From the sequence record NC_027399.1: a DNA stretch of 64,000 nucleotides, one strand, 5' to 3'. Within the stretch, counting starts at the first letter, position 1; each line of letters begins with the position of its first letter. Positions 35,008 to 59,621 of the stretch are shown in pieces. Under the pieces are notes generated by a model, which did not search any database, was not told where the DNA came from, and saw only the letters and a program-made list of their open reading frames with translations. Made by a program: the position numbers and the translations under genes.

Positions 35008-35598
35008 ATGTATCACAATGAAACAATAGAGCTATTTGAAATAATCAACTCATTTGAGCCGGAGATGTTAAAAACATTACCCAGTTATGATGTACAACAC
35101 AACGGACGTTCTTTCAGTTATATTTCAACATATGCAGAATCAGAACATCCAATAAAATACAACGAATTTACGGTTAAATGGGTAACAGAAAGGGAAGATG
35201 AAGTTGTACCAACTATTTCAGTTGGTTCTTCAACTTTAACATCATTGACTCGTACTTACAATAATGTCAGTACTGATTTATTGAATACTTGTACAGTACT
35301 TGTATCAAGTGATTTATCCAGATTGATTTCAGTACAATGGGAAATGGGCTTGAATAGCAATATGATTTACCCACAGGCTATGATTAGTTCTACAATTATT
35401 AAAAAAACAACATCTGAAATGAAATTGATGAATGCGTTGTATTTGCGAAATGAAAGTGTATTAATTAATGGTGTACTTTATGATTTAAATGCAAATGCAA
35501 ATGCATTCACTGAAGATATTAGTGATGATAAATCACATTTTTCTATACTAAACGTCATTAATTTAAGGAACATTTTTAATGAATTACGATTGGCTTGA
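35008..35598 (+). CDS. hypothetical protein
   Basis: ATG 35008 after AGGTG RBS. Confidence 0.65.
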   Translation: MYHNETIELFEIINSFEPEMLKTLPSYDVQHNGRSFSYISTYAESEHPIKYNEFTVKWVTEREDEVVPTISVGSSTLTSLTRTYNNVSTDLLNTCTVLVSSDLSRLISVQWEMGLNSNMIYPQAMISSTIIKKTTSEMKLMNALYLRNESVLINGVLYDLNANANAFTEDISDDKSHFSILNVINLRNIFNELRLA

Positions 35599-36142
35599 AA
35601 CCCTTATTAACGAATCATGTAATGCACTAAAAGAATATGATATTTCAGTGTTTTTCAATCCACTATTCAATGATCACAAATTTGAATCATTTGATATAGA
35701 AAAAAGAGATAATTTTATTATCTTAAAAAATGGTATTAGTCAGAAAGAAGTCGTGACATATAAAAAGAATTCAAGTCCTTATAATATTAGTACTGCGATA
35801 GTTGGTAGTTCTGCGATAAATGGTAATATCAATGTTTATAACAAAAATCCATTTCATGATGATTTACCTGATTATCACAGTATTGAGTATGTAAATTACA
35901 CTTATTCATTTGTTTTCAGACAAGACGGTTTTATCGGGTTTGATGTAAAGAAAAAATCAGAAACTCTATTGAATATTATTGTTGGAAATAGTGATATTTT
36001 GATATACAATGAAAAAGGTTATAACTGGTACAACAAAGAAACATTTGAAGAATTTTCATTTCAAAATTCATTAATTGAACCAAGAAAAAATTTTGATTTA
36101 TTTTATATTAATTCTGTACTTAAAAATTTTAAATTAGTTTAA
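35579..36142 (+). CDS. FQxS-motif family protein
   Basis: C-terminal TFEEFSFQNSLIEP. Confidence 0.6.
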   Translation: MNYDWLETLINESCNALKEYDISVFFNPLFNDHKFESFDIEKRDNFIILKNGISQKEVVTYKKNSSPYNISTAIVGSSAINGNINVYNKNPFHDDLPDYHSIEYVNYTYSFVFRQDGFIGFDVKKKSETLLNIIVGNSDILIYNEKGYNWYNKETFEEFSFQNSLIEPRKNFDLFYINSVLKNFKLV

Positions 36143-36152
36143 GGATAATAAA

Positions 36153-36515
36153 ATGTGGTATATTATTAGTGTAGTAGTACTTTCTGTTTTGGTTGGTATT
36201 GTATTACTGAAAGGTGTAACGTATACAATGTCTAAAATAGACAAGTACCAGGAAAATTCAGTAATCGATTTGTTTATTGATTACCCAAAAAGCATCATTG
36301 CTTTTCTGTTTGTTATGGTACTGATTGGTTTTTATATGGTATCTCATCAAATTGGAGAAATGTACACTTGTGCCATCCGAAGTAGTTCACAGAATGTAGA
36401 AACCGAATATAGTTGGTATTTTGATAAATGTCGCTTCAAAAATAAAGATGGTGCATGGGTAGATATTGATCGTTTATTGGGTATGCCAGATGGCAAAGAA
36501 CATGAACAGCAATGA
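36153..36515 (+). CDS. two-TM membrane protein
   Basis: two hydrophobic helices, C-terminal CxnC. Confidence 0.65.
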   Translation: MWYIISVVVLSVLVGIVLLKGVTYTMSKIDKYQENSVIDLFIDYPKSIIAFLFVMVLIGFYMVSHQIGEMYTCAIRSSSQNVETEYSWYFDKCRFKNKDGAWVDIDRLLGMPDGKEHEQQ

Positions 36516-37026
36516 ACATAAATTCTTCATAGAGCCAGAAGATGAAATAGACTATTTTGATGCAATAGACAGTACTGAAGATGGATATACACATATCAAT
36601 ATATATAGTAAAGGTAAAACTAAATTAGGACGCGATTTATCTAATTTTAGTCCCTATAGTTTTACGCTTGAACCATATGGATGGTTTCCATCAGTAGAGT
36701 CATTTTATTTCTGGTTTTTAACTGGACAAAAACACCATGAGCTACGTAAGCTCTCTGGGGCGGCAGCTAAGGCTGCTGCGGAAAAGTATACCCATGACAG
36801 GCTTGAGATGACCGATGAGCGTCTTGGTGTGATACAGGCCGCTATTTGTGCCAAGATAGTACAGAACCCCGACTTAGCAGAGCGTTTAAAGAAAAGTACA
36901 TTAGCTTTTAAGCATTATTATTGCTATGGTACTAAAGTAATAAACGTGGAAGATGAACATGGGTGGTTTGTTCAAACAATCGAAGATATAAGGACTGCAT
37001 TAAAAGAAGGAGATGAACATGAATAA
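36502..37026 (+). CDS. NADAR-family protein (T4 gp30.3-like)
   Basis: HINIYSKGKTKLGRDLSNFS, FPSVESFYF, AKIVQNP, F.HYY.YG. Confidence 0.75.
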   Translation: MNSNEHKFFIEPEDEIDYFDAIDSTEDGYTHINIYSKGKTKLGRDLSNFSPYSFTLEPYGWFPSVESFYFWFLTGQKHHELRKLSGAAAKAAAEKYTHDRLEMTDERLGVIQAAICAKIVQNPDLAERLKKSTLAFKHYYCYGTKVINVEDEHGWFVQTIEDIRTALKEGDEHE

Positions 37027-37252
37027 TACACAGTTTGAATCATTTGATATAGAGAGTATATTAAAACCAACTGATAACTGTACTGTACTTATGAATATGT
37101 ACTGGATAGTCAAAGATGAAAAAGTCTTTAGATCATTACGAACTAAAGTATGGCAATGCAATAAATTTGAGAGTGTAGTTAAACATGTAATCGAATCTTA
37201 TCCCGGTTGTGAGGTTCGTTTTCTTGAATATGCTTATGTAAAGAAGGATTGA
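37013..37252 (+). CDS. hypothetical protein
   Basis: 79-aa ORF in coupled operon. Confidence 0.6.
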   Translation: MNMNNTQFESFDIESILKPTDNCTVLMNMYWIVKDEKVFRSLRTKVWQCNKFESVVKHVIESYPGCEVRFLEYAYVKKD

Positions 37253-37695
37253 TTATGAAATATTATATGGTAACGGAAGGTGATTCGAGTGGTATTCATT
37301 TTTTATGGTCTTATTATGAATTACTTGACTGTTGCACCGTAGAAGATGCAGAAGATTTATACAGAGAAGAAAATGGATATTCACTGGATGCACCTTATGG
37401 ATTGAGAATTTATAGTAAAGAAATTACAGAAAAAGAATATCATGATGGATTGCATTTTAACGATTATTATGGTGTTAGAACGCTAATTACCGAATTGATG
37501 TTTAAAAATAACATTTTCCCACTAAAAAGTTGGGCTTTAATGTTTGCAAATCCAAAAAAACCTGTTAGAATAGGGTTTCCTGGTTCACATCTAGTCTATC
37601 GTATGAATGATAAACGAGAGCTTAGCTACCAGTATGATTATGATTCACATAAGTTTGGTCTTCTACCAGCATTTAAAGGTTTGACAAATGAGTAA
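37249..37695 (+). CDS. hypothetical protein
   Basis: 148-aa ORF. Confidence 0.65.
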   Translation: MIMKYYMVTEGDSSGIHFLWSYYELLDCCTVEDAEDLYREENGYSLDAPYGLRIYSKEITEKEYHDGLHFNDYYGVRTLITELMFKNNIFPLKSWALMFANPKKPVRIGFPGSHLVYRMNDKRELSYQYDYDSHKFGLLPAFKGLTNE

Positions 37696-38023
37696 AGATT
37701 CATTAGAATTTATTTTACGTTGTGATTGTGGTGAAAAATCAGATCATGTAATTCACATTGCACAGTACGATCTAGACGAAGAGTACGGTGATAATAAACT
37801 TGGCACTTGTTTAATCAGTGCTCGTTTAGAACCATGTTTTACATGGTATGAACGTGTTTGGATTGGTATCAAATACATCTTTGGTTACAATAGTTATCAG
37901 TATATGGATACAATGGTTGATGTTGATATCCTACGTGAAGTAGTACAACAGTTAAAAGATGAACGTTCAGAAGAAGACAAAAAAGCTTCTCGTGAAAAAC
38001 GCTCAGAGGTTAAGGTTCTATGA
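37688..38023 (+). CDS. conserved phage hypothetical protein
   Basis: CDC..H motif; W.ER.WIGIKYIFGY motif. Confidence 0.7.
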   Translation: MSKDSLEFILRCDCGEKSDHVIHIAQYDLDEEYGDNKLGTCLISARLEPCFTWYERVWIGIKYIFGYNSYQYMDTMVDVDILREVVQQLKDERSEEDKKASREKRSEVKVL

Positions 38024-38214
38024 GTGTGTTATTTGAAAAGAAATATTGTACTAAATGCTTGACAGCTTATACAATTCAGGGTATGATTTGTTGCTCAAAC
38101 TGTCAAAGCACAGATGCTCAAACGTTTTTGGTTGATGATCGTTACACCGATTTAATTCAATTCAAAGCGAATCGAAATTTAAAACATTTTAGTGCTTTAC
38201 ACGACAAAGATTGA
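38020..38214 (+). CDS. small zinc-ribbon protein
   Basis: CTKC..CSNC. Confidence 0.6.
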   Translation: MSVLFEKKYCTKCLTAYTIQGMICCSNCQSTDAQTFLVDDRYTDLIQFKANRNLKHFSALHDKD

Positions 38215-38259
38215 ATGCTATAATCATCTTAACTTAAACAAAAACAGGAATTACTTTAT

Positions 38260-38751
38260 ATGACTAACGTTAATACCAATCTAGTAACTGATATCAAAAA
38301 AGTTATTACTTCTCATCATTTCTTTGCACCAGAAAAACAACGAGTCATCTCTGATATCAAAGAAGATGAACTTAGTATTATTATTCGTTTTAAAGAACCT
38401 GGTGATGAAATTTCATCACAGTTCACTGTACTTCGTGGTAAATTCCGCGAAGAAGGCGTTGACAAGATCCCAGCTTACATTCTTTTTATTACACTTGGTA
38501 GTGTAATTAAGCTGGAAATTGATGAAAATCTGGAGCGTTCATATAAATTCATGCTTGCACCAGTTACAGATGATGATAACATTGAACTGGATTTCAAGAA
38601 TGATTTCACTGAAGAAGAATTCTTTCAGCAAAGTACAATCCATGATTTCCGTTCAGTAACTTATGAACATGTCGAACTTATCAAAGATATGATTGAACCA
38701 GTTACCAGTTACGAGAAATATCTCGATGGTCAAGCTGAAGGCAACGAATAA
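38260..38751 (+). CDS. FQxS-motif family protein
   Basis: FTEEEFFQQSTIHDF; early promoter TTTACA-17-TATAAT upstream. Confidence 0.75.
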   Translation: MTNVNTNLVTDIKKVITSHHFFAPEKQRVISDIKEDELSIIIRFKEPGDEISSQFTVLRGKFREEGVDKIPAYILFITLGSVIKLEIDENLERSYKFMLAPVTDDDNIELDFKNDFTEEEFFQQSTIHDFRSVTYEHVELIKDMIEPVTSYEKYLDGQAEGNE

Positions 38752-38755
38752 AAAT

Positions 38756-38784
38756 AAATAACCCACTTCGGTGGGTTATTTTCT
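38756..38784 (+). terminator. rho-independent terminator
   Basis: AAATAACCCAC-TTCG-GTGGGTTATTT. Confidence 0.75.
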
Positions 38785-38801
38785 ATATAAGGATATAAAT
38801 T

Positions 38802-39359
38802 ATGTTAAAAGAAATTCAAAAATTAACAAATTCAATTGTAGATTTTCTTAAAGATAAAAATGGTTTTAGTACTGAAGTATCAAAACAGGGTGTTCAGCTA
38901 ATCGTTAAAAATCCTAATGGTACTGAAACTTTGTATGATGTTTATGAATTGCTTTTATATAAACTTAGTGCTAATAAACTAGGTGGTGATATTCAGTTAA
39001 ACATTAATGATAGTACTGAGGGTAAGATTTTTGCAATTAACACGAATGTAAATTTTGATATTCATTCTAAAATCCTCGAAATTAATAATTCATTTGATGA
39101 TTTCAAACACGATACCATTCGTGGTGTTTTTGTTAGTACTCAATTGTCTGAAAGTACAAATCCGTTTTCGGTACTAACTATGTATAAAAATGGTACATGG
39201 GTTCGTTACGATTTAACACTGTCGGAATTACTGTACGCTTGTGTAAATGGGTATAAATTACAATTGAACGATTCAGGTTTTGTATACAATGAATTACGTG
39301 AATTGTGTGAAAATGTAAAAAAAGAAATGAAGCAAGAAGAAAATACAATATCCAAATAA
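38802..39359 (+). CDS. hypothetical protein
   Basis: 185-aa ORF, AAGGA RBS. Confidence 0.7.
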   Translation: MLKEIQKLTNSIVDFLKDKNGFSTEVSKQGVQLIVKNPNGTETLYDVYELLLYKLSANKLGGDIQLNINDSTEGKIFAINTNVNFDIHSKILEINNSFDDFKHDTIRGVFVSTQLSESTNPFSVLTMYKNGTWVRYDLTLSELLYACVNGYKLQLNDSGFVYNELRELCENVKKEMKQEENTISK

Positions 39360-39375
39360 TGAGGTAGATCTCTGT

Positions 39376-39798
39376 ATGACATTACATGAAGTACTGAATA
39401 GTTTCTTTGAATTGAATATTTCAGAAATGAAAACCAAACAAAATAGACACCAACATAGTGTTTGGTATGATGCCCAACCACAACCGTTTTTAATCAATTT
39501 TAAAGAAACTGAAACATACACAATAATGAGATTTCATCATTTTGATGGTGAAAATAATTACAGGGTATCATATGATGCAGGAACTGATCGACTGATTTAC
39601 ACAGTAATGGGTACCATTTCATCAACCATTACGATTGGAAACTTCTCTTCTTATAAATCAGAAGATAATTTTTTTCAGGATTCACTGATTAATGATTACA
39701 ATGATTTATCATTCGAAGATATTGACAAAATGATGAATATGTTCTATAATGTAAAAAATACAAGTTTATCCCTATTTGGTGAAGATGATGAAATTTGA
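39376..39798 (+). CDS. FQxS-motif family protein
   Basis: KSEDNFFQDSLINDY. Confidence 0.7.
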   Translation: MTLHEVLNSFFELNISEMKTKQNRHQHSVWYDAQPQPFLINFKETETYTIMRFHHFDGENNYRVSYDAGTDRLIYTVMGTISSTITIGNFSSYKSEDNFFQDSLINDYNDLSFEDIDKMMNMFYNVKNTSLSLFGEDDEI

Positions 39799-40225
39799 TT
39801 TAGAAAAATTTCTGGATTTGGATTTAGATTCATTTTATATCAGAAAGTTTATTTTTAAACCACACACAAATGTGGTTGATTATGCTGTGATTGAACTACA
39901 TGAATCAGACTATACAATTTGGTACGATGTTGATGATTGTATTCAACTAAAGGAATGTGATGAATGTAAAGGTTATGTTCTGTTGTATGACCTCAATACA
40001 AATGAAATTACATTAAAAACTTCACATTATGATGAATACGGTATTATAACAAGACGTGAATGCGTTGCATTTTCACATGATGATTACACAGAAGAATCAT
40101 TTTTTATGATTAGTACCTTACATGATGTTGGAGAATTTACATTTGAAACTTTCGATAAATTTAATAAAATTTTGAAAAAGATTAAATCAATGATCAAGGA
40201 AATTGAAAATGAACAGTCCAAGTAA
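39788..40225 (+). CDS. FQxS-motif family protein
   Basis: YTEESFFMISTLHDV. Confidence 0.7.
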   Translation: MKFDLEKFLDLDLDSFYIRKFIFKPHTNVVDYAVIELHESDYTIWYDVDDCIQLKECDECKGYVLLYDLNTNEITLKTSHYDEYGIITRRECVAFSHDDYTEESFFMISTLHDVGEFTFETFDKFNKILKKIKSMIKEIENEQSK

Positions 40226-40622
40226 ATGTTATATTGTTATTCGTAATGATTTGGATATGCCAGAAGGTAAATTTGGTGCACAAATCGGCCATGGCATCGA
40301 CGCAGTATGGAAAGAGGTTTTGGTAGCCGGTACAATGGTGCGTGCTGCAAATATAGCCAATGAACAACCAAAAGAGCGTGATATCAAAATACAGGATGAA
40401 ATTTCTAAATGGGTGAGTGACGGTAGTAGAAAGATTATTCTAAAAACAAAATCAGAAGACGAATTACTGAAAATTTATAAAAAGGTATTGTCTGAAGGTT
40501 GTATTTGTACTAAAATTTATGATTATGGATTTAATTTTTTTGATGGTTTAACTTTAACTGGTATTGTTGTACATCCATGTTCAGAAGAAATTAAAACATT
40601 AAAACGAGTACGCTTATGGTAA
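40209..40622 (+). CDS. peptidyl-tRNA hydrolase type 2 (PTH2)-like
   Basis: YIVIRNDLDMPEGKFGAQIGHG, W...G.RKIILK..SE.EL, DYG, T.I...P. Confidence 0.85.
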   Translation: MNSPSKCYIVIRNDLDMPEGKFGAQIGHGIDAVWKEVLVAGTMVRAANIANEQPKERDIKIQDEISKWVSDGSRKIILKTKSEDELLKIYKKVLSEGCICTKIYDYGFNFFDGLTLTGIVVHPCSEEIKTLKRVRLW

Positions 40623-40990
40623 ATGAACATTTAAAAGAATTATGTTCTTTATGGAAATCATCTGATGTAAAATTTGAACCTGTACCCAAAAATAAAGATA
40701 ACTGGCATAATTCTATTGTTATGGGGTCTTGTGGTTTTTTTCTTTTACCTATGGTACTAAAAGATAAAAAAATAGGTATTGTTGTTTTATACAATGATCT
40801 TATATATTATTTTTTGTACGAAGATGAAATTCAGTACGTACATAATAATATGACACATACATACAAAAGAGATACCACACATGAAGAACTATTCCAACTA
40901 AGTACTTTATACGATGAAGTAATTCAGTACGAAAACTTAATAGAAGTTTTTAACTTATATGATTCCGTAATGGAGGTAATTGAAAGATGA
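40616..40990 (+). CDS. FQxS-motif family protein
   Basis: TTHEELFQLSTLYDE. Confidence 0.7.
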   Translation: MVNEHLKELCSLWKSSDVKFEPVPKNKDNWHNSIVMGSCGFFLLPMVLKDKKIGIVVLYNDLIYYFLYEDEIQYVHNNMTHTYKRDTTHEELFQLSTLYDEVIQYENLIEVFNLYDSVMEVIER

Positions 40991-41328
40991 TGAGTCATTG
41001 TAAATTCTGGCTTCCTGTTATGGTTGTTCTGTTTATTATTTTTACAGTAGTAAACTATAAAATCCACAATTCTATCCCAAGACAGCCTACAGCAGAAGAA
41101 TTAGCTATTCATCAAAATAGTGGTTTATATGCTGAAGTACTCAATAAAATCAAAAACAAATGTACTGGTATCAGTGATAATGAAAGGAATACATTCTATA
41201 CATGCCAGGACGGTTCTAAAGTATCAGTGATTTACTGGAAACGTCAAGATAGAAGTGGGTATGTCACTCGTGATTTTGATAAGGATGGGAAATTAATTTC
41301 GATTTATGGACACCCAGATGATATCTAA
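40987..41328 (+). CDS. membrane-anchored hypothetical protein
   Basis: N-terminal TM helix. Confidence 0.65.
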   Translation: MMSHCKFWLPVMVVLFIIFTVVNYKIHNSIPRQPTAEELAIHQNSGLYAEVLNKIKNKCTGISDNERNTFYTCQDGSKVSVIYWKRQDRSGYVTRDFDKDGKLISIYGHPDDI

Positions 41329-41770
41329 AGAACAACATAAATTTTTATTCAAAATATTGAATTCTTATAAAGTTAATAAGTTCAGTACTAAACACGTTCA
41401 CAATCCAAAAATTGTTATTAGCACAAGACGATATATAGGAAATAACAATTTTGAAATATACTTATATAAAGGAACTATTTCATTAGAAATTCAAAGATAT
41501 GGTATTATTTTATTATTAATTGAGTATAATCCAATTTCTGACAATATGACGTTATTATTCAATGATAATGAACATTGTTCTGAAATCGTTTATCGTATAA
41601 ACGATGTGTCGGAAATTCTTGAAGAAGATGGTTATTTTCAACAAAGTCTTGTACAAAATCTTCCATTGGAATATAATGATTTTTGTAAAATGATGGATGA
41701 TATCACAACCATCAAAAATTCAATGCTGGAACGTTTTGAGTTAACAGAGCAAGTGTGCGACAATGACTAA
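41306..41770 (+). CDS. FQxS-motif family protein
   Basis: LEEDGYFQQSLVQNL. Confidence 0.7.
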   Translation: MDTQMISKEQHKFLFKILNSYKVNKFSTKHVHNPKIVISTRRYIGNNNFEIYLYKGTISLEIQRYGIILLLIEYNPISDNMTLLFNDNEHCSEIVYRINDVSEILEEDGYFQQSLVQNLPLEYNDFCKMMDDITTIKNSMLERFELTEQVCDND

Positions 41771-42017
41771 AGTAGTTAGAAAGCGTAGAGTACTTGATAA
41801 TGATGAATTCAAATCATTAGAGATTCATCGTCAATTGTTTCACCGTCTTTGTGCTGGTGAGAAACAAATTGTAGTTACTGAAACATATGAAGAACCAGAA
41901 AATATTTTCGGTAACTATTTCCCTGTATTCAATTTGTATATTAAACGCGGTCTATTGGAAGTAATTACAATAGATCAGTTACCGGAAGATGAACATGAAT
42001 TTACTGTTATCAAATAA
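41763..42017 (+). CDS. hypothetical protein
   Basis: 84-aa ORF. Confidence 0.6.
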   Translation: MTKVVRKRRVLDNDEFKSLEIHRQLFHRLCAGEKQIVVTETYEEPENIFGNYFPVFNLYIKRGLLEVITIDQLPEDEHEFTVIK

Positions 42018-42078
42018 AGAACCATTAGATCGTGATGATGATTTTTATGATGAACGTTATGGTGAATCGGAGGAATAA

Positions 42079-42633
42079 ATGGGATTAGATATCTATAAAT
42101 GTAAAATTAGTTCTACTAAACAAGAACATGGTTTTATTACATGTTCACAAGAAGAAATTGATTCTAATAAATCAATGAAAGAACTATTCCAGAAATATAA
42201 AAATTATATCAATATCGGCACTGAAGAATACATTGATATTGAACAAAGTTTAATCAAATTTAATCTTTCTGATGAATGGTTTTTATCTGGATATGAGTTC
42301 AATGAAGATGAGGATTCATATTATGCAGTATTTGATTGTACTCTACCATTGTTCGATTCCGTAAAAGTATTATATAATGAACTCATCACAAAAGATGAAA
42401 AAGTTTATACATTATATTACACAGAAATTGGCTATCAACGTAGAGATTATAAACCTGGAATCTATGCTGATCTTTGGGGATGTGACCAGGACGATCATGA
42501 CGGATATTACAGCTTAAATGTAGTAACAGATAATTCAGTACTTGAACTTGTTAAAATGTATGCGAATGAAAATTCTCCACTTAGTCAATGGGTACTAAAC
42601 GATAATGATGAATTTATTATCTTCGATTATTGA
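42079..42633 (+). CDS. hypothetical protein
   Basis: 184 aa, MGLDIY phage N-terminal motif, GGAGG RBS. Confidence 0.75.
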   Translation: MGLDIYKCKISSTKQEHGFITCSQEEIDSNKSMKELFQKYKNYINIGTEEYIDIEQSLIKFNLSDEWFLSGYEFNEDEDSYYAVFDCTLPLFDSVKVLYNELITKDEKVYTLYYTEIGYQRRDYKPGIYADLWGCDQDDHDGYYSLNVVTDNSVLELVKMYANENSPLSQWVLNDNDEFIIFDY

Positions 42634-42663
42634 GATTTCTAAATAAAATAAAACATAACAAGG

Positions 42664-43557
42664 ATGTTTATGAAACCTATTACAGTACTGTCATTATTCA
42701 ATGGGATGAGTGTTGGGTATATGGCACTAAAGAATGCTGGAATTCCAGTACAGAAATATTACTCATCAGAAATTGATAAATTTGCTATTGCTGAATCGCA
42801 AGCCAACTACCCTGATATTATTCAGTTAGGTGATATAACTAAATGGGAAGATTGGGATATCGACTGGGGTAGTATTGACCTACTTATTGGTGGAAGTCCT
42901 TGCACTGATGTAAGTTTTGCGGGAAAACAAGAGGGGTTAGTGAAACCAGATGAAAACGGTGATGGTGGAACAAGAAGTGGTTTATTTTATATAATGATTG
43001 ACATATTCAATCATATTAAATCGATAAATCCAGATTTAAATTTTTTATTTGAAAATGTCAAGATGAAAAAAGAACATCTTGAAGAATTTAATAATAATAT
43101 AGGGGTTGATCCTGTTCTAATCAATTCTGAATTATATACTGCTCATTACAGACAGAGATATTACTGGATTAGCTCAAATAAGCTAATTCTCAATCCCACC
43201 TACAAAGCCCCAGTACTTCAAGATATTATTGTTAATGCATATACTGACAGGAATAAATCATATTGCATTGATGCCAATTACTGGAAAAAGGGGAATATCA
43301 CACAGTACTTACGCAAATCAAGAAGACAGATTGTTTATCTAAGAGACGATCATGATTTATTCAGTACTGAAGAAAAAATTAACACATTTAAACTCAATGT
43401 TGACTATAGACATTTAACAGTAGACGAAGTATGTTTATTACAGGGTGTACCTGTTGGATTTTTTAAAGTAAGTAGTGCAACACAAGCATACAAAATGCTA
43501 GGTAATGGATGGACATGTCCAGTTATTGAACATCTATTAAAGGAAATTTTCTTTTAA
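42664..43557 (+). CDS. C5 cytosine DNA methyltransferase
   Basis: motif I VLSLFNG, IV GGSPC, VI FENV, VIII R.RYYW, X LGNGW; TAAATA at 42640. Confidence 0.92.
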   Translation: MFMKPITVLSLFNGMSVGYMALKNAGIPVQKYYSSEIDKFAIAESQANYPDIIQLGDITKWEDWDIDWGSIDLLIGGSPCTDVSFAGKQEGLVKPDENGDGGTRSGLFYIMIDIFNHIKSINPDLNFLFENVKMKKEHLEEFNNNIGVDPVLINSELYTAHYRQRYYWISSNKLILNPTYKAPVLQDIIVNAYTDRNKSYCIDANYWKKGNITQYLRKSRRQIVYLRDDHDLFSTEEKINTFKLNVDYRHLTVDEVCLLQGVPVGFFKVSSATQAYKMLGNGWTCPVIEHLLKEIFF

Positions 43558-43586
43558 TTAATAATTTAAAATGGAAAATAATATCA

Positions 43587-43796
43587 ATGATTAGTAAAGT
43601 ATACCTTGATGAAAATATTTCTAACGAAAAGACACAATATGCAGTTTATGATTCCTTGACTGATAAAGTACTAACAGAGAGTATTCATTCTTATAAAGCA
43701 GATGTTGAAGATTTTATGACACACAAATATGGTGCTGACTGGCGTACAACACATGCATTATATAGTATTCGTGAAATTAAAATCGTAGTGTTATAA
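43587..43796 (+). CDS. small hypothetical protein
   Basis: 69-aa ORF. Confidence 0.6.
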   Translation: MISKVYLDENISNEKTQYAVYDSLTDKVLTESIHSYKADVEDFMTHKYGADWRTTHALYSIREIKIVVL

Positions 43797-43849
43797 ACAT
43801 AAAAAATCCACCACATGTGGATTTTTTTCTATTTGAGATTAAATTAAAC

Positions 43850-44287
43850 ATGCACAATGAAGAAATAATTCATTTTCTTAAATTTTATTTAAAATGTATC
43901 AATGCTGTTCAAAAATTAATGGAATGTGAAATGATTAATGATTTTAATGATCATTTTGGATATATAAGTACAGATTTATATCCCGTCCCTGTTCGTGCAA
44001 AATGGAATTATGATCAAGATGCATATGCAATGCAACTGGATTTTGATTTATTCGGACTACCATCTAAATTTAATATAGAAACTATTTGTTTTGATAAAAA
44101 TGATGGTTTGATTTTAATTTGTTATAACAATAAAACAGAAGTTGATTTAAAATACAGAGAATGGTTAACCGAAGAATCGTATTTTCAGTCCTCATTAATT
44201 TATGATTTGGGTAGTACTGATTTACAGTACTGGAAAAAATGCATTGATTTATTTGAAAAGATTGAAGGAGTAATGACAGGTGTTTAA
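43850..44287 (+). CDS. FQxS-motif family protein
   Basis: WLTEESYFQSSLIYDLGSTDLQYWKKC; close paralog of 54399..54863. Confidence 0.7.
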   Translation: MHNEEIIHFLKFYLKCINAVQKLMECEMINDFNDHFGYISTDLYPVPVRAKWNYDQDAYAMQLDFDLFGLPSKFNIETICFDKNDGLILICYNNKTEVDLKYREWLTEESYFQSSLIYDLGSTDLQYWKKCIDLFEKIEGVMTGV

Positions 44288-44675
44288 AATAAAACTAATT
44301 TATACCACCGGTGATACATTCGAAACACGTGAAGTAGAAAGATTTATTAATTGCGAATGGGATACAGAAGAGAAAGCTATTCATGAAATGAATAAAATCC
44401 GAGAGCACTGGATTTTCAATAAAAAAATTAGTTCTACTCGTGATAAAGGCACAAAGAAGAGATTGGTATCACAAGCTATTATGCAATCATGGTATAAACC
44501 TGGTAATTCTGAATATACTATTCTGCTAGTTGATAATGATGGAAATTCTTTTGAGATGTATGCTGCATGGTTAGGGTATTTTGAAATTCTTCATAGTACT
44601 GAAGTAGTCAATACAAACCAATTAGACAACTATATTGATTTCGATGAATTAAGATCAAACATGGGATTGTGGTAA
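44280..44675 (+). CDS. conserved phage hypothetical protein
   Basis: I.Y.TGDTF..W.GYFE.LH; GTG start after GGAG. Confidence 0.65.
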   Translation: MFKIKLIYTTGDTFETREVERFINCEWDTEEKAIHEMNKIREHWIFNKKISSTRDKGTKKRLVSQAIMQSWYKPGNSEYTILLVDNDGNSFEMYAAWLGYFEILHSTEVVNTNQLDNYIDFDELRSNMGLW

Positions 44676-45109
44676 TGAATGGTCCAACTGTACTAAAAAT
44701 CCTTCGTAAATTTAAACACCCAATATTGGTCGGTCGCTGGAAATCATTAAAAGAAAATAAAAATACCGACGATCAAAAAAATATCAATTATAGATGGTAT
44801 TGGGATTATTCTAAAGATTATGGTGATTCACTTTGTGTAAAAATTAAATTCAATAATTATAATAAATGGTCTAGAGATAAAAAATATGTATATTCATATG
44901 ATATTCACTTATCAAAGGAACATGTATTTATTTTTCATAGAAGTTACAACAAATTTTCAACTAAACATTATGTACTATTTTCTATAAATGAATTATATGA
45001 AGATTTAGAAAGTGTATTATTTCAGCAATCATTATTGACTTCTACTGGTATGGTGAGTACTCAAGAAATTGAAGTACTTAAAGAATTAAAAGATATATAT
45101 TTTACATAA
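44669..45109 (+). CDS. FQxS-motif family protein
   Basis: DLESVLFQQSLLTS. Confidence 0.65.
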   Translation: MVMNGPTVLKILRKFKHPILVGRWKSLKENKNTDDQKNINYRWYWDYSKDYGDSLCVKIKFNNYNKWSRDKKYVYSYDIHLSKEHVFIFHRSYNKFSTKHYVLFSINELYEDLESVLFQQSLLTSTGMVSTQEIEVLKELKDIYFT

Positions 45110-45128
45110 TACAAATTGAGGATAATAA

Positions 45129-45656
45129 ATGTTTGGTATTTTATATAAATGCAATGATGGTAGAGACTATTATTGTACGTCTTCGAGATTTGCACATTTC
45201 TCAGAAGATATTGAATCGATTGCTGAATTTGCACAACAAAAAACTGCTGAAAAAATTGCAAACCATTTTACCAAAACAAATGATTTTGAAGAATTATATG
45301 GTACTGGTAAATTGTTAGTGATTAAAGTAGTTAAAGTGCCTTTAAGTCTAAAGGAAATTCCATTGATTAAACTAAAATCTGGATACCGAATTTATTCAGA
45401 AGAAAATGATGAATATTATAGTGGTAATAAAAATCCAAAAAGTTTCAATCATTTAAATCTTGATGATTTACATTGTAGTACTGTTTATAAGTCAGAAAAA
45501 GAAGCACAAAAAACGATTGATGCTATGATTAAAGAATTTTATGATTATGCATTCAACACTTATGAACCAGGTCATAGTCGTTATGAATATCACGTAAAGA
45601 TATATGAAACAGATTACCTCATTGCTTCTAAATTAAAAATTGTTTATATTGAATAA
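45129..45656 (+). CDS. hypothetical protein
   Basis: 175 aa; internal duplication-like A..F..K.A / .YKSEKEA pattern. Confidence 0.7.
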   Translation: MFGILYKCNDGRDYYCTSSRFAHFSEDIESIAEFAQQKTAEKIANHFTKTNDFEELYGTGKLLVIKVVKVPLSLKEIPLIKLKSGYRIYSEENDEYYSGNKNPKSFNHLNLDDLHCSTVYKSEKEAQKTIDAMIKEFYDYAFNTYEPGHSRYEYHVKIYETDYLIASKLKIVYIE

Positions 45657-50258: not shown

Positions 50259-50504
50259 ATGAATGAAAAAATTGTAAAACTAAACACTTTACTACAAGAA
50301 ATTGTAGATCTAAGTTCTCACATGGATGATACACATATTCATATGGTTGAGGAATTATGTTCATCTGTACTTGCAGTATTTGCTGATCATGATTATGTTC
50401 CTATGGTACACGTAGAGGCACCTGAAGAAGACGGCGAAACTGAAATTTCTCCTGGTGTATTTGCTGTTCGCAAGGACAATAAAATTACGATTGTTAAAAA
50501 ATAA
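50259..50504 (+). CDS. small acidic hypothetical protein
   Basis: 81-aa ORF followed by hairpin AAGGAGACT/AGTCTCCTT. Confidence 0.6.
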   Translation: MNEKIVKLNTLLQEIVDLSSHMDDTHIHMVEELCSSVLAVFADHDYVPMVHVEAPEEDGETEISPGVFAVRKDNKITIVKK

Positions 50505-50549
50505 TATTAAGGAGACTGCTAATAGTCTCCTTTATTTTTGGATAGATTT

Positions 50550-51436
<887 letters not shown>

Positions 51437-52526: not shown

Positions 52527-53000
52527 ATGAAAGTCGAATTGGGAAGTACTATCAAAGCAGGTTATACTGTTTCAGTTACAACGTGGGAAAATGATGGAGA
52601 TAATTATCAAACAAATGACATTGTGGGTTTATCTAAAGAAGATGCCAAAATGTTTATTGATACTTTACCCATTTTTAAATCCGTTAATAGTAAAAAGAAA
52701 GGTCTTGGAAACAAAGAACTTAATATTAACCAGTACTTGGGTAAGTTCGAAGACCTAATCAATAACAATATTATCACAGTGTCATTTGCTGAAAAATATT
52801 TTGGTTATATTAACCCAAATAGTGATTATGATGAAGATGAACAACAAGACACGATTATTGAAGCATTGTCTGAAATTCTAGGATATCCAGTTGAATACGA
52901 TTATGGTTTTATCAGAGTCGTTGAAAAAGTTCAAGTACTCTACTTCGATGAAGATACCGTAATTCCTTCAGGTTTGAAAGTAGACACCAGTACTTTATAA
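52527..53000 (+). CDS. conserved phage hypothetical protein
   Basis: IKAGY.VSVTTWENDGDNY..G motif. Confidence 0.75.
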   Translation: MKVELGSTIKAGYTVSVTTWENDGDNYQTNDIVGLSKEDAKMFIDTLPIFKSVNSKKKGLGNKELNINQYLGKFEDLINNNIITVSFAEKYFGYINPNSDYDEDEQQDTIIEALSEILGYPVEYDYGFIRVVEKVQVLYFDEDTVIPSGLKVDTSTL

Positions 53001-54398: not shown

Positions 54399-54863
54399 AT
54401 GAATATCACTAATGTAAAAGATTTTTTAGAATATTTTATTAAGAATACTCGTGCACGTGATGAATTAGAAAAGAATGGATTCATCCAAGGTAACGATTAC
54501 AGTAATTTCTTTTATAGTATTGATAAACATGAATATTATGTCGATGCAACTTTAAGTGATAATCCATATTATATAAAAGATGGGTATTGCATTGGATTTA
54601 CGTTTGAAGATAAATCAGTAGATGCACCAATAAACTTTTATGCATTATATTATAATAAAAAAGATAATATTTTGAAATTAGGATTTACTAGTGACATGGA
54701 TGAAGATGTTGTATTCAATTGTAACACATGGTTGGAACATGATTCATTCTTTCAAAGTACATTAATTCATAACTTTATGACAACAGATTTAGAGTACTGG
54801 AAAAATTGCATAGAATTACTTAATGTAATTTATAATGAACAAATCAAACAAAAATGGCAATAA
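54399..54863 (+). CDS. FQxS-motif family protein
   Basis: WLEHDSFFQSTLIHNFMTTDLEYWKNC. Confidence 0.7.
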   Translation: MNITNVKDFLEYFIKNTRARDELEKNGFIQGNDYSNFFYSIDKHEYYVDATLSDNPYYIKDGYCIGFTFEDKSVDAPINFYALYYNKKDNILKLGFTSDMDEDVVFNCNTWLEHDSFFQSTLIHNFMTTDLEYWKNCIELLNVIYNEQIKQKWQ

Positions 54864-55481: not shown

Positions 55482-55540
55482 AATTTTAATTTAAATAGTA
55501 CTTGACAAAAATGTTCAGTACTGATACAATAAAGAATATT

Positions 55541-55618
55541 GGCCCTTTACTCTCAAGTGGTTAGAGAATCCGACTCATAATCGGTAGGCTCTGAGTTCGA
55601 ATCTCAGAAGGGCCACCA
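55541..55618 (+). tRNA. tRNA-Ile2(CAT) (lysidine-type; Met less likely)
   Basis: GGCCCTT/AAGGGCC-A-CCA and GACTCATAATC arm closely resemble enterobacterial tRNA-Ile2; own promoter TTGACA-17-TACAAT. Confidence 0.88.
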
Positions 55619-55637
55619 AATTTTAAAACATAATATA

Positions 55638-56345
55638 ATGAAAATACAATTACAATATCCATATAATCAAGATTGGGATACAGGTTCATTAACAATTAAT
55701 CCCGAAGGTCGAAGAACTGTTATTTTATATAACAAAACTACAAAAATCACAAGTAGTACTGCTTATGCACGATATTTGTTAGCAGTGCACAATAACAGAT
55801 ATTTAACTGAAAATGAAGAAGCTGACCATATTGATGAAGATTTCACTAATGATGATATATCTAATCTTCAAATTTTGACAATAGAAGAACATAGAGCTAA
55901 ATCAATTGCGAATGGGATTCAAGCTAAATATGATGAATTTGTGTGTAAAGGTTGTGGAATAAAATTTTTAAGAAGACATAATCAAGTTAAGTCATATACA
56001 AAATATTGTAGTAAAAAATGTTCTTGGAAAAATAATCCTCCACCAACAAAAACAAAAAATGGTGACACGACAATCGATTATGATAAAGTAAAAGAATATA
56101 TAAACGATGGATTGTCAGATACTGAAATTGCAAAGAAAATGAATATAAATCGCAATTCAGTACTAAATTATAGAACTAAACACAATATACCTTCTAAAAA
56201 ATTTGCTAATGTGAATATTTTAGAAGATAATATTGATGAAATAAAACAACGTTTGCTTTCTGGTGAAAAGAAAGTTGATATATACAAAAGCTATGGTTCT
56301 TCAAAAAATGTTTTTGCAAGATTTTTAAAGAGACATGGATTATAA
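55638..56345 (+). mobile_element. HNH homing endonuclease in tRNA cluster
   Basis: EADHIDEDFTNDDISNLQILT..EH HNH motif, CxxC..CxxxC zinc finger, two C-terminal HTH-like segments. Confidence 0.8.
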
Positions 56346-56354
56346 TAGAATAAT

Positions 56355-56427
56355 GACTCTGTAGCACAATCGGTGGTGCGATTGACTGTTAATCAATTGG
56401 TTGGGGATTCGAGTTCCTCCAGAGTCG
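56355..56427 (+). tRNA. tRNA-Asn(GTT)
   Basis: GACTCTG/CAGAGTC, GCAC/GTGC D arm, ATTGA-CTGTTAA-TCAAT, G73, no encoded CCA. Confidence 0.9.
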
Positions 56428-56445
56428 CTTAACAAACCAAAGAAT

Positions 56446-56593
56446 TGTACCTAAATAACGAGTATATGGATTCTCTATGATTGTCCCTGTATGAGTTAGA
56501 GAGATTATTCATAAGAAGTCGAGTGTATAGATTCTCAAAGAAATGATTGTTTATACATGAGTTATCTTAAAACGAATATCTCAAGGTACACCA
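56446..56593 (+). ncRNA. CCA-ended ~147-nt RNA with two tandem repeated hairpin modules
   Basis: GTACCT/AGGTAC-A-CCA; two modules CGAGT.TAT.GATTCTC..ATGATTGT..ATGAGTTA. Confidence 0.6.
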
Positions 56594-56600
56594 AACAATT

Positions 56601-56649
56601 GACTCTGTAGTTCAGTTGGTAGATCTTATATAGTTACCAACCAGAGTCG
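56601..56649 (+). pseudogene. internally deleted tRNA-Asn-like remnant or mini RNA
   Basis: same acceptor GACTCTG/CAGAGTC-G-CTT as tRNA-Asn; D-arm-like TAGTTCAGTTGGTAGA; no anticodon or T arm. Confidence 0.6.
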
Positions 56650-56657
56650 CTTACAAT

Positions 56658-56722
56658 GGAAGGTGGTAATACATCAGTATTACCTTTTAAGACAGAAGAT
56701 ATGAGTATCTTCCCTTCCACCA
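56658..56722 (+). ncRNA. 65-nt CCA-ended tRNA-Ser-like mini RNA
   Basis: GGAAGG/CCTTCC-A-CCA, GGTAATAC/GTATTACC hairpin, GAAGAT/ATCTTC hairpin stacked on acceptor (6+6 bp). Confidence 0.6.
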
Positions 56723-56724
56723 CA

Positions 56725-56812
56725 CATTGTACTCTTCTCCCGTAAGGAGAATGACAAAAAACTATCCGAAAGATAGAAAGCCTGAAATAACAGGGTGCAA
56801 TTAAATTACAAT

Positions 56813-56813
<1 letters not shown>
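56725..56813 (+). ncRNA. three-hairpin cloverleaf-like RNA
   Basis: CATTGTA/TACAATG encloses TTCTCC/GGAGAA, CTATC/GATAG and CCTG/CAGG hairpins. Confidence 0.5.
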
Positions 56814-56877
<64 letters not shown>

Positions 56878-56882
56878 ATTTT

Positions 56883-57007
56883 GGACAAATCGTACTGAAT
56901 TAGTACTGTAATAATAGACACTTATTGCTGTAAACTGGAATGCGGTATACATTCCTTCAGATACAGAGTGTGACAGTATGATGTTAAAGGTATCCTTTGA
57001 CTGTCCA
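56883..57007 (+). ncRNA. multi-hairpin small RNA
   Basis: GGACA/TGTCC+A; ACACT/AGTGT, CTGTA/TACAG, GGAATG/CATTCC, GACAGT/ACTGTC, AAAGG/CCTTT stems. Confidence 0.45.
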
Positions 57008-57033
57008 AATTAATTTAAATGGAGTACTGAATA

Positions 57034-57234
57034 ATGTCCAAATATGTTAATCGACAAAAACGAAAAGCACGTTCCAAGGATGAAATTCTTCAATTGATTC
57101 AAGAAAATAAAAAAGATGTAGTGATTGATGAATATATTTTTCAGTATGGTAATCAACGAGGAATGGTACAAGAAAGTAATGGTAAGTATCATTCTGAGCA
57201 TTACGATCTTATTAAAAGAATTCTATTGAAATAA
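57034..57234 (+). CDS. small hypothetical protein
   Basis: 66 aa, GGAG RBS. Confidence 0.6.
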   Translation: MSKYVNRQKRKARSKDEILQLIQENKKDVVIDEYIFQYGNQRGMVQESNGKYHSEHYDLIKRILLK

Positions 57235-57244
57235 GGAGAATTAC

Positions 57245-57439
57245 ATGTTTTGGAACCTAGTTTGTTTATTTGGTCGTACATTTGTATTAGCTGTTATTCA
57301 TTCTCCTGGTATTAAAAACTTTGTTTCATACGAATTCAAAGAATCGTATCACAATAATACTGAAAAGCGTTCAGTTCAAATGTGCAAAGACTTTGGCATT
57401 GAGATGAAAGAGCCATTCAAAAAATATAGTGATGAATAA
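57245..57439 (+). CDS. small hypothetical protein
   Basis: 64 aa, AAGGAG RBS. Confidence 0.6.
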   Translation: MFWNLVCLFGRTFVLAVIHSPGIKNFVSYEFKESYHNNTEKRSVQMCKDFGIEMKEPFKKYSDE

Positions 57440-57454
57440 AGAAAGTAATCAATA

Positions 57455-57580
57455 ATACCTATCATCTAATATCAGTACTGATGCGTATCAGCAGATGGCT
57501 TGATGGGCAGTACTGACAGGATACATCGTTCGCCGGGTGCGGGTTCGGTGGATATACGTAAAGTCGTATTGGGTATGCCA
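57455..57580 (+). ncRNA. 126-nt CCA-ended RNA with tRNA-like acceptor/T-arm 3' domain
   Basis: ATACCTA/TGGGTAT-G-CCA with adjacent ATACG-TAAAGT-CGTAT hairpin (7+5 bp); internal TCAGTACTG/CAGTACTGA arm. Confidence 0.65.
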
Positions 57581-57603
57581 AATATAATAATAAAAATATG
57601 TAA

Positions 57604-57679
57604 TAATGTGATAGCTCAAATAGGTAGAGCGGGAGGCCATAGTGCTGACTAGTTTGTGAGTTCAATTCTCACCCATTAT
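57604..57679 (+). pseudogene. pseudo-tRNA
   Basis: TAGCTCAAATAGGTAGAGC D arm and GTGAG-TTCAATT-CTCAC T arm intact; acceptor and anticodon stems disrupted; CAT in loop region. Confidence 0.55.
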
Positions 57680-57690
57680 TAATAAAATTG

Positions 57691-57725
57691 TAAGCTACCC
57701 TGTTATTTGGGTAGCTTTTTCTTTT
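57691..57725 (+). terminator. terminator ending the RNA island
   Basis: AGCTACCC-TGTTATTT-GGGTAGCT plus T tract. Confidence 0.7.
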
Positions 57726-57744
57726 TATAACAAGAGAGATTATC

Positions 57745-58161
57745 ATGAGTAATGTTACTTTACTGAATATTTTACAAGAATGCTATGAAAAACTTGAAAA
57801 TTCCAATCCAAGTGTCATATTCAACTCATCATTTGATAATTATTCTACTATAAATTATAGAGTAAAAATTTTAGTATATAATCACTTTGATTTATCATCA
57901 TTAAGTGATTGTAGTAACATTTACTTGCACATTAGTGATTATGATGGTGTGGGTGAATATACTATGTCGATTGATATTTACAAAGGATATTTCTATTATA
58001 AAAACAAAAAATTTGACAATTTTGAAAATTTATTCCCGTTGACTGAAGATACAATGTTTCAGTACTCAACACTTTATGACACATCATCCTTGACAATCGA
58101 TGAGTTAAATTTTATAATGTCTATTAGTTTGGATATTCCAATTTATGAAGCATCATTATAA
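57745..58161 (+). CDS. FQxS-motif family protein
   Basis: LTEDTMFQYSTLYDT. Confidence 0.7.
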   Translation: MSNVTLLNILQECYEKLENSNPSVIFNSSFDNYSTINYRVKILVYNHFDLSSLSDCSNIYLHISDYDGVGEYTMSIDIYKGYFYYKNKKFDNFENLFPLTEDTMFQYSTLYDTSSLTIDELNFIMSISLDIPIYEASL

Positions 58162-58178
58162 AATCTAGGAGCATTTTT

Positions 58179-58337
58179 ATGAAAATTAAGTGTTGTGTAT
58201 GTGATTGTGAAATTGATGAAAAGCATGTATATGGCGAATGGGATGATTACTGCTCCGATTGCTGGGAATCTGAAGGACGTGATGCAGAACTATGGGAAGA
58301 TGAGAGTGAGTGGGATGAGGATGAGGATGAAGAATAA
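58179..58337 (+). CDS. 52-aa zinc-finger protein with highly acidic tail (not in ORF track)
   Basis: MKIKCCVCDC..YCSDCW..WEDESEWDEDEDEE; AGGAG RBS. Confidence 0.7.
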   Translation: MKIKCCVCDCEIDEKHVYGEWDDYCSDCWESEGRDAELWEDESEWDEDEDEE

Positions 58338-58433
58338 ACGTATGTTTAAAGTACTGTTTCTTCATGCGTTTTAATTTATAGAGGCTGATTCATTGAATCG
58401 GCCATTTTCTTTGTTAAAAAAAGAGATAAAAAT

Positions 58434-58841
58434 ATGAAAAAATTTCTTTCAAAAGAACACGAAGAAAATATTCTTAATGCATTGAGTGTATTTCCAGAGA
58501 GTGTTATAAGTAATAATAAGAATTCTACATATTATTATGGTAAAGGTAATTGGTTTTATTTTAGCGACAGTTCATATATGTGTGTATTAAATCTATGTAC
58601 TGAAGAATATTCTTATTGTTTGAGGATCGATCCTCGTTATAAATTAATCCTACTATGCGAAAAGAATGATGAATTTTATGAAAGTGAGATAGATGATACC
58701 GATTCATATATTAGTAATTTTTATCTCGAAGAAGATGTTTATTTTATGGATAGTACTGTGAATGAAATTACTATTCCTTTTAGTATAATGAAACGTTCAC
58801 ATGAATTTCTAAAATACAGCAGAGAAAAATTTCATGACTGA
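58434..58841 (+). CDS. FQxS-motif family protein
   Basis: LEEDVYFMDSTVNEI. Confidence 0.65.
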   Translation: MKKFLSKEHEENILNALSVFPESVISNNKNSTYYYGKGNWFYFSDSSYMCVLNLCTEEYSYCLRIDPRYKLILLCEKNDEFYESEIDDTDSYISNFYLEEDVYFMDSTVNEITIPFSIMKRSHEFLKYSREKFHD

Positions 58842-59205
58842 TATAAATGAAGTTATTGAGCATTTTTATAATTGGGTACTAACGGATCCAATAAAAACTG
58901 GATTAATTGAAAAATATAACTGCTCTATGTATTCTTATTGTTCAAATAAAGCTACGATGTATAGTAAGGATGTTGATAATTATTTACTAATCTCTGACGA
59001 TGTAGTTTATGATGTATTTGACAATGAAATTGTCATTGATGGTGGTGATGTTGATATTGTAAAATTACATGATATGGATTTCTCATGTACTGAATCAGCG
59101 GCGTTTCAATTAAGCACATTATATGATTTCCGATGCAGTACTGAAAGTATTGTATTATTATTGAAAATAGTACATATTTTAAGAAAAAAGAGAATGGTAT
59201 TATAA
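58834..59205 (+). CDS. FQxS-motif family protein
   Basis: CTESAAFQLSTLYDFRCSTE..LLLKIV. Confidence 0.7.
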   Translation: MTDINEVIEHFYNWVLTDPIKTGLIEKYNCSMYSYCSNKATMYSKDVDNYLLISDDVVYDVFDNEIVIDGGDVDIVKLHDMDFSCTESAAFQLSTLYDFRCSTESIVLLLKIVHILRKKRMVL

Positions 59206-59621
59206 TGGTGGAATTTAATGTTCAAGATTTTTATGATTTTGTAATGAAAGCCGAAAAGAATAATCGTGAATATATTAAAACAATTGGGGATAATATATAT
59301 GAACACTTCTGTTATTCTTTAAAGGAGGGAATGTCTGCATTTTCAAATTCAACTATGGATAATGCATTATATAATTTATTAATGCATAATTGTCATTATG
59401 TATTTGATATTTACAGTGATCAAATAATTTATAAAATTATGTTTTTTGATAAAAAACAAATTGAAAATACAATTAATTTGGATTGTTATGATTCTGAATC
59501 AAAAGAAGGATTTGCTTTTCAGTTATCAGTTTCATATGATTTCCCATTTAGTACTGAAGATTATATTTTAATGTTAAAGATTGTTGATAAATTAAGACTA
59601 AACGAAAGGAATTTCAAATGA
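59205..59621 (+). CDS. FQxS-motif family protein (tandem paralog of upstream gene)
   Basis: SKEGFAFQLSVSYDFPFSTE..LMLKIV. Confidence 0.7.
   Translation: MVEFNVQDFYDFVMKAEKNNREYIKTIGDNIYEHFCYSLKEGMSAFSNSTMDNALYNLLMHNCHYVFDIYSDQIIYKIMFFDKKQIENTINLDCYDSESKEGFAFQLSVSYDFPFSTEDYILMLKIVDKLRLNERNFK

Follow-up and report, generated by a model that had tools for sequence, protein, structure and literature searches.

Small single-domain proteins, most of them acidic, form a paralog family with a conserved motif helix in Klebsiella jumbo phage K64-1

Why does a jumbo phage carry, within one region of its genome, a series of small open reading frames (ORFs) whose N-terminal parts look unrelated while a short motif recurs near their C termini? 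The question arises in Klebsiella phage K64-1 (AB897757.1/NC_027399.1), an Alcyoneusvirus and RaK2-like jumbo myovirus with a genome of 346.6 kb, of which we analyzed bases 124001 to 188000, a stretch of 64,000 nucleotides here called the window (positions refer to the window unless given as genome positions). Megablast aligned window positions 35579 to 45579 with K64-1 bases 159579 to 169579 at 100% identity. RaK2-like jumbo phages that infect Klebsiella, Escherichia coli, Salmonella, Yersinia, Erwinia, or Cronobacter have been isolated widely, and some are candidates for therapy; the majority of their genes still carry the label "hypothetical." RefSeq gives this label to all 15 motif-bearing ORFs (gp220 to gp288) listed in an initial annotation of the window, which had read them as a modular library of variable N-terminal domains joined to a constant docking module. 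We show here that the motif-bearing ORFs represent one real paralog family of small (approximately 110 to 225 amino acids [aa]), mostly acidic single-domain proteins, which has apparently been undescribed so far.

A paralog family defined by its motif

All 15 motif strings were found at the ORFs for which they had been reported. The core pattern, F[QM]xS[TLV], matched 13 times in plus-strand ORFs of the window and not once in its minus-strand ORFs, whereas 500 rounds of shuffling these ORFs gave 0.86 ± 0.94 matches, with a maximum of 5. Every match fell within 35.5 to 59.6 kb of the window, in ORFs of 123 to 187 aa and at a distance of 27 to 58 residues from the C terminus. Because the conserved motif serine is encoded by both types of codon, AGY in seven members and TCA in five, the motif is conserved at the protein level, and a DNA-level repeat as its source is ruled out.

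Pairwise BLASTP detected little similarity among the window members. The best pairs were gp239 and gp270 (E value, 5e-14; 29% identity over 136 aa) and gp287 and gp288 (E value, 4e-7; 39% identity); these had been taken for recent duplicates, and they are indeed the closest pairs, but at such identities they are old. An unsupervised jackhmmer analysis of the 221 window ORFs connected 12 of the 15 listed ORFs and recruited no unlisted one, and a profile of 12 window members yielded 61 matches (E ≤ 1e-3) among 1.84 billion representative proteins. One of these matches, a beta-propeller protein of 1253 aa that the profile matched in 10 stretches, was discarded as a false positive. The 60 genuine outside relatives are nearly all 115 to 190 aa long, most of them aligned over nearly the entire profile, and 57 carry the motif. 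When a hidden Markov model (HMM) was built from 48 outside proteins only, it recovered 13 window ORFs, mostly over their full length, with E values from 2.8e-25 to 2e-4, the next ORF of the window scoring at 0.22.

A genome-wide census with a profile iterated over the 1193 K64-1 ORFs of at least 50 aa converged on 46 profile-supported members, all on the coding strand; the same procedure gave 0 matches in reversed or shuffled ORFs. The initial estimate of at least 15 paralogs is thus exceeded in the genome as a whole, while in the window 13 of the listed ORFs have profile support. The other two are gp257, whose membership is borderline (hhalign probability, 5%), and gp220, which is a possible but unproven member. 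The hhalign probability of gp220 was 1.5% and concerned the motif region alone, and the protein has just two near-identical homologues among 5.8 billion proteins searched, for which reason its AlphaFold2 model is of low confidence and leans on the family alignment that guided it. In this model, with an overall predicted local distance difference test score (pLDDT) of 57.6, residues 24 to 94 are unreliable and residues 98 to 186 (pLDDT, 63 to 78) form six strands and two helices. For gp241, whose ORF start had earlier been listed as 44669, the hhalign probability was 66%. The highest subthreshold scores with the family profile (E values, 0.15 to 0.45) belonged to an annotated virion structural protein (37688 to 38023) and to the ORF at 44280 to 44675; these two may have scored by chance or be relatives that have diverged very far.

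The isoelectric point (pI) lies between 4.2 and 5.0 in 11 of the 13 window members, the remaining two being basic. Across 65 retrieved proteins of less than 300 aa, comprising close homologues and outside relatives, the median pI was 4.8.

Fold of the domain and place of the motif helix

The AlphaFold2 model of gp229, run with a 60-sequence family alignment, is one compact domain (pLDDT, 95.8; predicted template modeling score, 0.88). Its elements follow in the order helix (residues 3 to 11), seven consecutive antiparallel strands (residues 19 to 87), motif helix (residues 96 to 105), and long, amphipathic final helix (residues 113 to 133), so that the E-x-x-F-Q-x-S-[TL] motif is an integral helix linking strand 7 to the last helix. 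Models of paralogs from BFVD superposed on gp229 across the whole chain with template modeling (TM) scores of 0.72 to 0.79, and the RaK2 orthologs of gp230 (TM, 0.72 over 146 columns) and gp258 (TM, 0.75) matched it over their full length at 15 to 16% identity. Good BFVD matches were confined to uncharacterized proteins of RaK2, Yersinia phages fHe-Yen9-03 and fHe-Yen9-04, Cronobacter phage GAP32, Pectobacterium phage CBB, E. coli phage PBECO4, and Erwinia phages. Because both the profile matches and the independent paralog models cover the full length of the proteins, the N-terminal parts are diverged homologues, versions of the same helix-plus-sheet, and not the unrelated domains for which they had been taken. 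The proposed split into a variable domain and a constant docking module fails with them, since the proteins form one compact domain and the paralogs are alike along their full length in both profile and structure.

Conservation was assessed in 155 members, of which K64-1 contributed 46, an E. coli phage 61, and metagenomes 48, with columns numbered as in gp229. The only strongly conserved columns in the whole domain are those of the motif helix: T/S95 (68%), E96 (83%), E97 (73%), F100 (99%), Q101 (92%), S103 (91%), T/L104 (95%), V/I/L105 (96%), and D/N107 (82%). When Q101 is exchanged, it is almost always for methionine, which is found in 8% of the members, three of them in the window. In the C-terminal helix, the share of hydrophobic residues is 0.85 to 0.99 at positions 113, 116, 119, 122, and 126. 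The initial description, a paralog family in which an amphipathic helix comes after a highly conserved motif, is supported and statistically solid.

The sequence pattern of the motif helix suggests what the helix may do. Position T/S95 and the acidic residues after it would fit a helix N-cap. Nine of 12 positions are constrained, the three free ones (98, 102, and 106) line up in one i/i+4/i+8 stripe, and the hydrophobic positions 99, 100, 104, and 105 are distributed around the circumference. The single free stripe, the hydrophobic residues on all sides, and the exchange of glutamine for methionine together suggest that the motif helix is a structural keystone, wedged in the core with the sheet on one side and the remaining helices on the other. 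The modular proposal had named its own counterpart, a motif that is simply the buried core of one ordinary fold, and the models come close to that description: the single domain is there, and burial is suggested.

Could the helices nonetheless serve as a docking device? In the adaptor library as initially proposed, the motif helix and the C-terminal helix would dock all paralogs on a common phage or host partner, or localize them, while the variable part recruits different targets. This idea draws on the contrast between the motif, with a pairwise identity of 47% among paralogs, and the other parts of the proteins, with 10 to 18%, on the retention at 65 to 92% of polar residues in the motif (E, E, Q, S, and D), and on the dozens of copies that are probably present together in one cell. 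We consider it unlikely, because no module can be separated from the one compact domain and because a helix constrained over approximately 240 degrees of its circumference, with four spread hydrophobic residues and a Gln-to-Met exchange, fits burial and not an exposed peptide.

The conserved acidic and polar residues, clustered as they are on one helix, could also be read as a site, and the proteins as enzymes or as binders of a small ligand or metal through E-E, Q, S, and D. No other polar residue in the domain is conserved that might complete such a site, methionine stands in for its glutamine in some members, and no enzyme fold stood among the listed matches of a Foldseek search of the PDB; we regard this explanation as very improbable.

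Arrays, age, and rate of change

Members of the family are concentrated in two arrays. Besides the 13 in the window and five that are scattered, 28 members lie in a second, larger and denser array outside the window (genome positions 245.7 to 275.9 kb), where nearly all genes from gp544 to gp564 belong to the family. Many of the second-array proteins are 160 to 224 aa long, with a longer tail past the motif, and all are annotated as hypothetical. Since several further motif-bearing ORFs of this array sit just under the threshold, the count of 46 is a floor. A 121Q/PBECO4-like E. coli phage of 352 kb (OR844650.1) has 61 members, also in two arrays. For 25 of the 46 K64-1 members, the best protein of the E. 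coli phage outscores every paralog in K64-1 itself, and a reciprocal best hit exists there for 26 of 46, the orthologs of the window members being collinear; gp227, for example, has a clear ortholog (137 bits) in the E. coli jumbo phage. With one-to-one orthologs for about half of the copies, much of the expansion predates the split of the two genera, and some duplication is younger than the split. With gp229 as the query, tblastn returned matches only in jumbo phages of Klebsiella, Escherichia, and Salmonella, and the outside relatives found by profile were located on metagenomic contigs of up to 333 kb.

The family changes faster than its surroundings. In a syntenic metagenomic relative, every family gene holds its position, with 48 to 63% identity (mean, 55%) compared with 58 to 98% (mean, 76%) for the interspersed nonfamily genes. 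Against a 98%-identical genome, 12 family genes with 38 synonymous and 50 nonsynonymous changes had a pooled ratio of nonsynonymous to synonymous substitution rates (dN/dS) of 0.29, and 37 other genes with 161 synonymous and 89 nonsynonymous changes had one of 0.13, which indicates purifying selection on the family, yet protein change at about twice the rate of the neighbors. The change is unevenly spread over the domain. Strand positions alternate between hydrophobic residues, which point towards the helices, and highly variable polar ones, and 21 intergeneric ortholog pairs were 59% identical over the motif helix and 18% over the loops, while within the strands they were 26% identical at positions facing inward and 14% at those facing outward.

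Both arrays lie in a part of the genome rich in sigma-70-type promoters. Near-consensus promoters, defined as matching at least 11 of 12 bases, occur 18 times on the plus strand of the window and 3 times on its minus strand, compared with 3.9 ± 2.2 in Markov simulations. Fourteen of the 18 lie in 29690 to 63680, and perfect 12/12 matches start at 31282, 39722, 45662, 48974, 58090, and 62073. Over the whole genome, such promoters cluster at approximately 153 to 282 kb, a range that includes both arrays. This concentration suggests that the arrays are transcribed early by the host polymerase.

The location of the arrays bears on whether the proteins might be virion or assembly components, such as decoration proteins or fiber-assembly chaperones. 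RaK2-like phages do have elaborate tail-fiber and whisker structures (PMC5259590, PMC10253068), and the gene for an annotated virion protein, at 37688 to 38023, lies among the members. However, none of the members in either array is labeled "virion structural protein" (a statement about annotation only), and the arrays stand apart from the structural modules, in the promoter-rich region just described. A virion role is accordingly among the least probable explanations.

The coordinates of the window members, and of the two helices in the modeled member, are given in Table 1.

Table 1. Family members in the window and helices of the modeled member gp229 (outside-only E, E value with the HMM built from outside proteins only)
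Feature	Position	Strand	Length (aa)	pI	Outside-only E	Remarks
gp220	35579..36142	+	187			Unproven; motif present; profile E 0.35
gp227	38260..38751	+	163	4.6	3.4e-19	
gp229	39376..39798	+	140	4.6	2.8e-25	Modeled member
gp229 motif helix, residues 95-107	39658..39696	+				Column conservation over 155 members
gp229 C-terminal amphipathic helix, residues 113-133	39712..39774	+				DSSP of model
gp230	39788..40225	+	145		2.7e-21	Met for Gln
gp232	40616..40990	+	124		6.5e-12	Full-length match
gp234	41306..41770	+	154		2.9e-14	
gp239	43850..44287	+	145		2.1e-21	Closest paralog, gp270
gp241	44675..45109	+	144	9.2 (basic)	2.7e-6	Match over residues 13-145
gp257	50550..50948	+	132			Borderline; degenerate motif; genome-wide profile E 0.006, residues 10-127
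gp258	50957..51436	+	159	9.6 (basic)	1.2e-23	Met for Gln
gp270	54399..54863	+	154		6.7e-13	Within tRNA cluster
gp284	57745..58161	+	138	4.2	1.1e-9	
gp286	58434..58841	+	135		4.5e-6	Met for Gln; jackhmmer-recruited
gp287	58834..59205	+	123		3.7e-12	Tandem paralog of gp288
gp288	59205..59621	+	138		2e-4	Genome-wide profile E 1.1e-18

Several genes that are not members are interspersed with the first array. By annotation, they include a WWE-domain protein (36153 to 36515), whose domain is unusual for a phage, a PTH2-type peptidyl-tRNA hydrolase (40209 to 40622), and a DNA methyltransferase (42664 to 43557). Symmetrical hairpins that resemble terminators on both strands lie at 43801 to 43827 and 50509 to 50532, just upstream of gp239 and gp257. 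Between 53141 and 56428, seven tRNA genes (Leu-taa, Gly-tcc, Arg-tct, Ser-gct, Ser-tga, Met-cat, and Asn-gtt) form a cluster that encloses gp270 as well as an HNH endonuclease gene (55638 to 56345). That HNH gene and three other small genes, at 50259 to 50504, 52527 to 53000, and 57245 to 57439, are unmatched in the compared part of the 98%-identical genome OU509535.1, which points to gene content around the tRNA cluster differing between close relatives. A separate set of paralogs is formed by the ORFs at 75 to 830, 11456 to 12040, and 18992 to 20701; the first is the terminal part of a gene annotated as a putative homing endonuclease, and the last shares 47% identity with it over 253 aa and a weaker likeness with the second.

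Putative function and comparison with known families

In PHROGs, the family is divided over at least 22 groups, every one of them of unknown function, and Foldseek found no match in the PDB at E ≤ 1e-3. Among the best 33 Foldseek matches, approximately 15 were chains of the Mam33/p32 family (145 to 181 columns), all of them weak (E values, 0.13 to 1.5; TM, ≤0.35; root mean square deviation, 9 to 17 Å). The Mam33-like fold begins with a long N-terminal helix, continues with six or seven antiparallel strands, and ends in C-terminal helices, one of which lies on the sheet; proteins with this fold are acidic and usually form trimers, in which the interface is mainly helical, whereas a bacterial (Vibrio) representative that lacks the long C-terminal helix and has a shorter N-terminal helix is monomeric (PMC2881812). 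Pfam MAM33 itself was not matched by 10 members at E ≤ 1, nor by 60 members at E ≤ 10 among the best 25 of 40 families, each of which came from a single member.

These matches invite the explanation that the phage proteins are Mam33/p32-like acidic chaperones or decoys, which would assemble through their conserved helices into homotrimers or mixed trimers and bind basic proteins or nucleic-acid-binding factors with an acidic face, in the manner of the eukaryotic p32 family. The order of elements, the acidity of most members, the recurrence of p32-family chains among the fold matches, and the helical interface of their trimers all speak for it. We nevertheless judge it improbable: the structural matches are weak and MAM33 is missing from the Pfam results just given, two of the window members are basic, and the helices are far shorter than the ones from which the p32 trimer is made, a difference that in the short-helix bacterial protein goes with a monomeric state. 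A further reading, in which the motif helix and the C-terminal helix form a common interface and some 50 coexpressed paralogs join in mixed Mam33-like oligomers or a shared phage or host machine, appears quite unlikely to us. If true, it would amount to a combinatorial adaptor system in which dozens of variable target-binding faces are displayed on a single fold, and the adaptor idea of the initial annotation would hold in that form.

The reading that we favor, with a confidence only slightly above even, is that of an ancient single-fold family with a keystone helix, an early-read repertoire of diversified putative binders or inhibitors. Host RNA polymerase would transcribe the family genes early; each paralog would present a different solvent-facing sheet surface and different loops on a constant helical backing; the repertoire of binders or inhibitors would serve in host takeover or counterdefense; and every copy would be retained for a target of its own.

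Several observations weigh against this reading. The pooled dN/dS of the family is below 1, and the variability of outward-facing positions is no proof of diversifying selection, because exposed residues vary fastest in any protein. The five polar residues of the motif are kept more strictly than fold stability usually needs, so that they may also serve a shared ligand, a partner, or an oligomer interface, and the case for burial of the motif residues is built on helix periodicity and on the substitutions. The evidence on promoters comes from consensus scans and remains at the level of sequence. Finally, scans of 60 members against Pfam, NCBIfam, and PADLOC gave no recurring family, and a profile search of the PDB gave nothing meaningful, its one match being at chance level (E value, 0.17).

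Three further protein types were considered and rejected. T4-type internal proteins, which have a conserved short signal at the N terminus and are present in the virion, were set aside given an N terminus that is not conserved, a motif in the C-terminal third, and no member annotated as a virion protein (this last point resting on annotation only). DNA mimics of the Ocr/ArdA type were not matched among the best 25 families or 50 structures in searches of Pfam, PDB sequences, and PDB folds, and acidity alone is a common property. For an ADP-ribosyltransferase-like active site, neither the order of the motifs nor the fold is suitable, a judgment made by reasoning only.

Among families of similar organization, large eukaryotic DNA viruses carry ankyrin and F-box proteins as arrayed, diverged paralogs in accessory regions, which evolve faster than the core genes. 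The K64-1 family resembles them in its many diverged, arrayed paralogs and in a rate of change above that of core genes, but ankyrin/F-box proteins consist of two modules with a separable docking domain, whereas the phage proteins are single domains. Bacteria carry polyimmunity loci (for example, of the SUKH type), tandem sets of diverged single-domain paralogs that share one fold and are thought to bind different targets. The small, tandem, diverged paralogs of one fold in K64-1 are organized likewise; unlike the polyimmunity proteins, with which they have no sequence match, they are encoded by a phage. The sole immunity protein among the Foldseek matches listed was a weak and partial one (74 columns; E value, 0.67).

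Compared with Mam33/p32/gC1qBP, including Trypanosoma brucei p22, the phage proteins share the order of elements, a small size, and mostly acidic composition, and no other family appears repeatedly among the best fold matches in the PDB. They differ in having no sequence relation, a poor superposition, shorter helices, and a motif helix with no known counterpart there. Because they fail on sequence and the three-dimensional match is weak, we call them Mam33-like in topology only and not members of that family.

Recognition of the family merges at least 22 separate PHROGs of unknown function into one superfamily and gives a common fold and origin to approximately 7% of the annotated features of K64-1 (46 of 683) and to 61 genes of the 121Q-like phage. 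It also supplies a defined gene set, for which a high-confidence model and a motif diagnostic of membership are available and which can be used in structural and expression studies of the accessory genome. Paralogs as such have been noted in these phages: approximately 10% of the gene products of RaK2 were reported as paralogues (PMC3622015), and 22 paralogous ORFs were reported for CBB (PMC5259590). In the literature searched, we found no mention of a paralog family of this kind, and the K64-1 motif family is not mentioned in the passages searched of a survey of 224 jumbo phages (PMC7824862). The survey describes as "unprecedented" the expansion of a zinc-ribbon family to approximately 35 copies in Bacillus phage G (PMC7824862). 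As described there, the zinc-ribbon family is the closest parallel in that one small domain occurs in dozens of copies per genome; its fold is different, and the K64-1-type family, with 46 to 61 copies, is larger than the expansion so termed. Compared with that of phage G, moreover, the K64-1-type expansion is common to at least two genera and largely older than their split.

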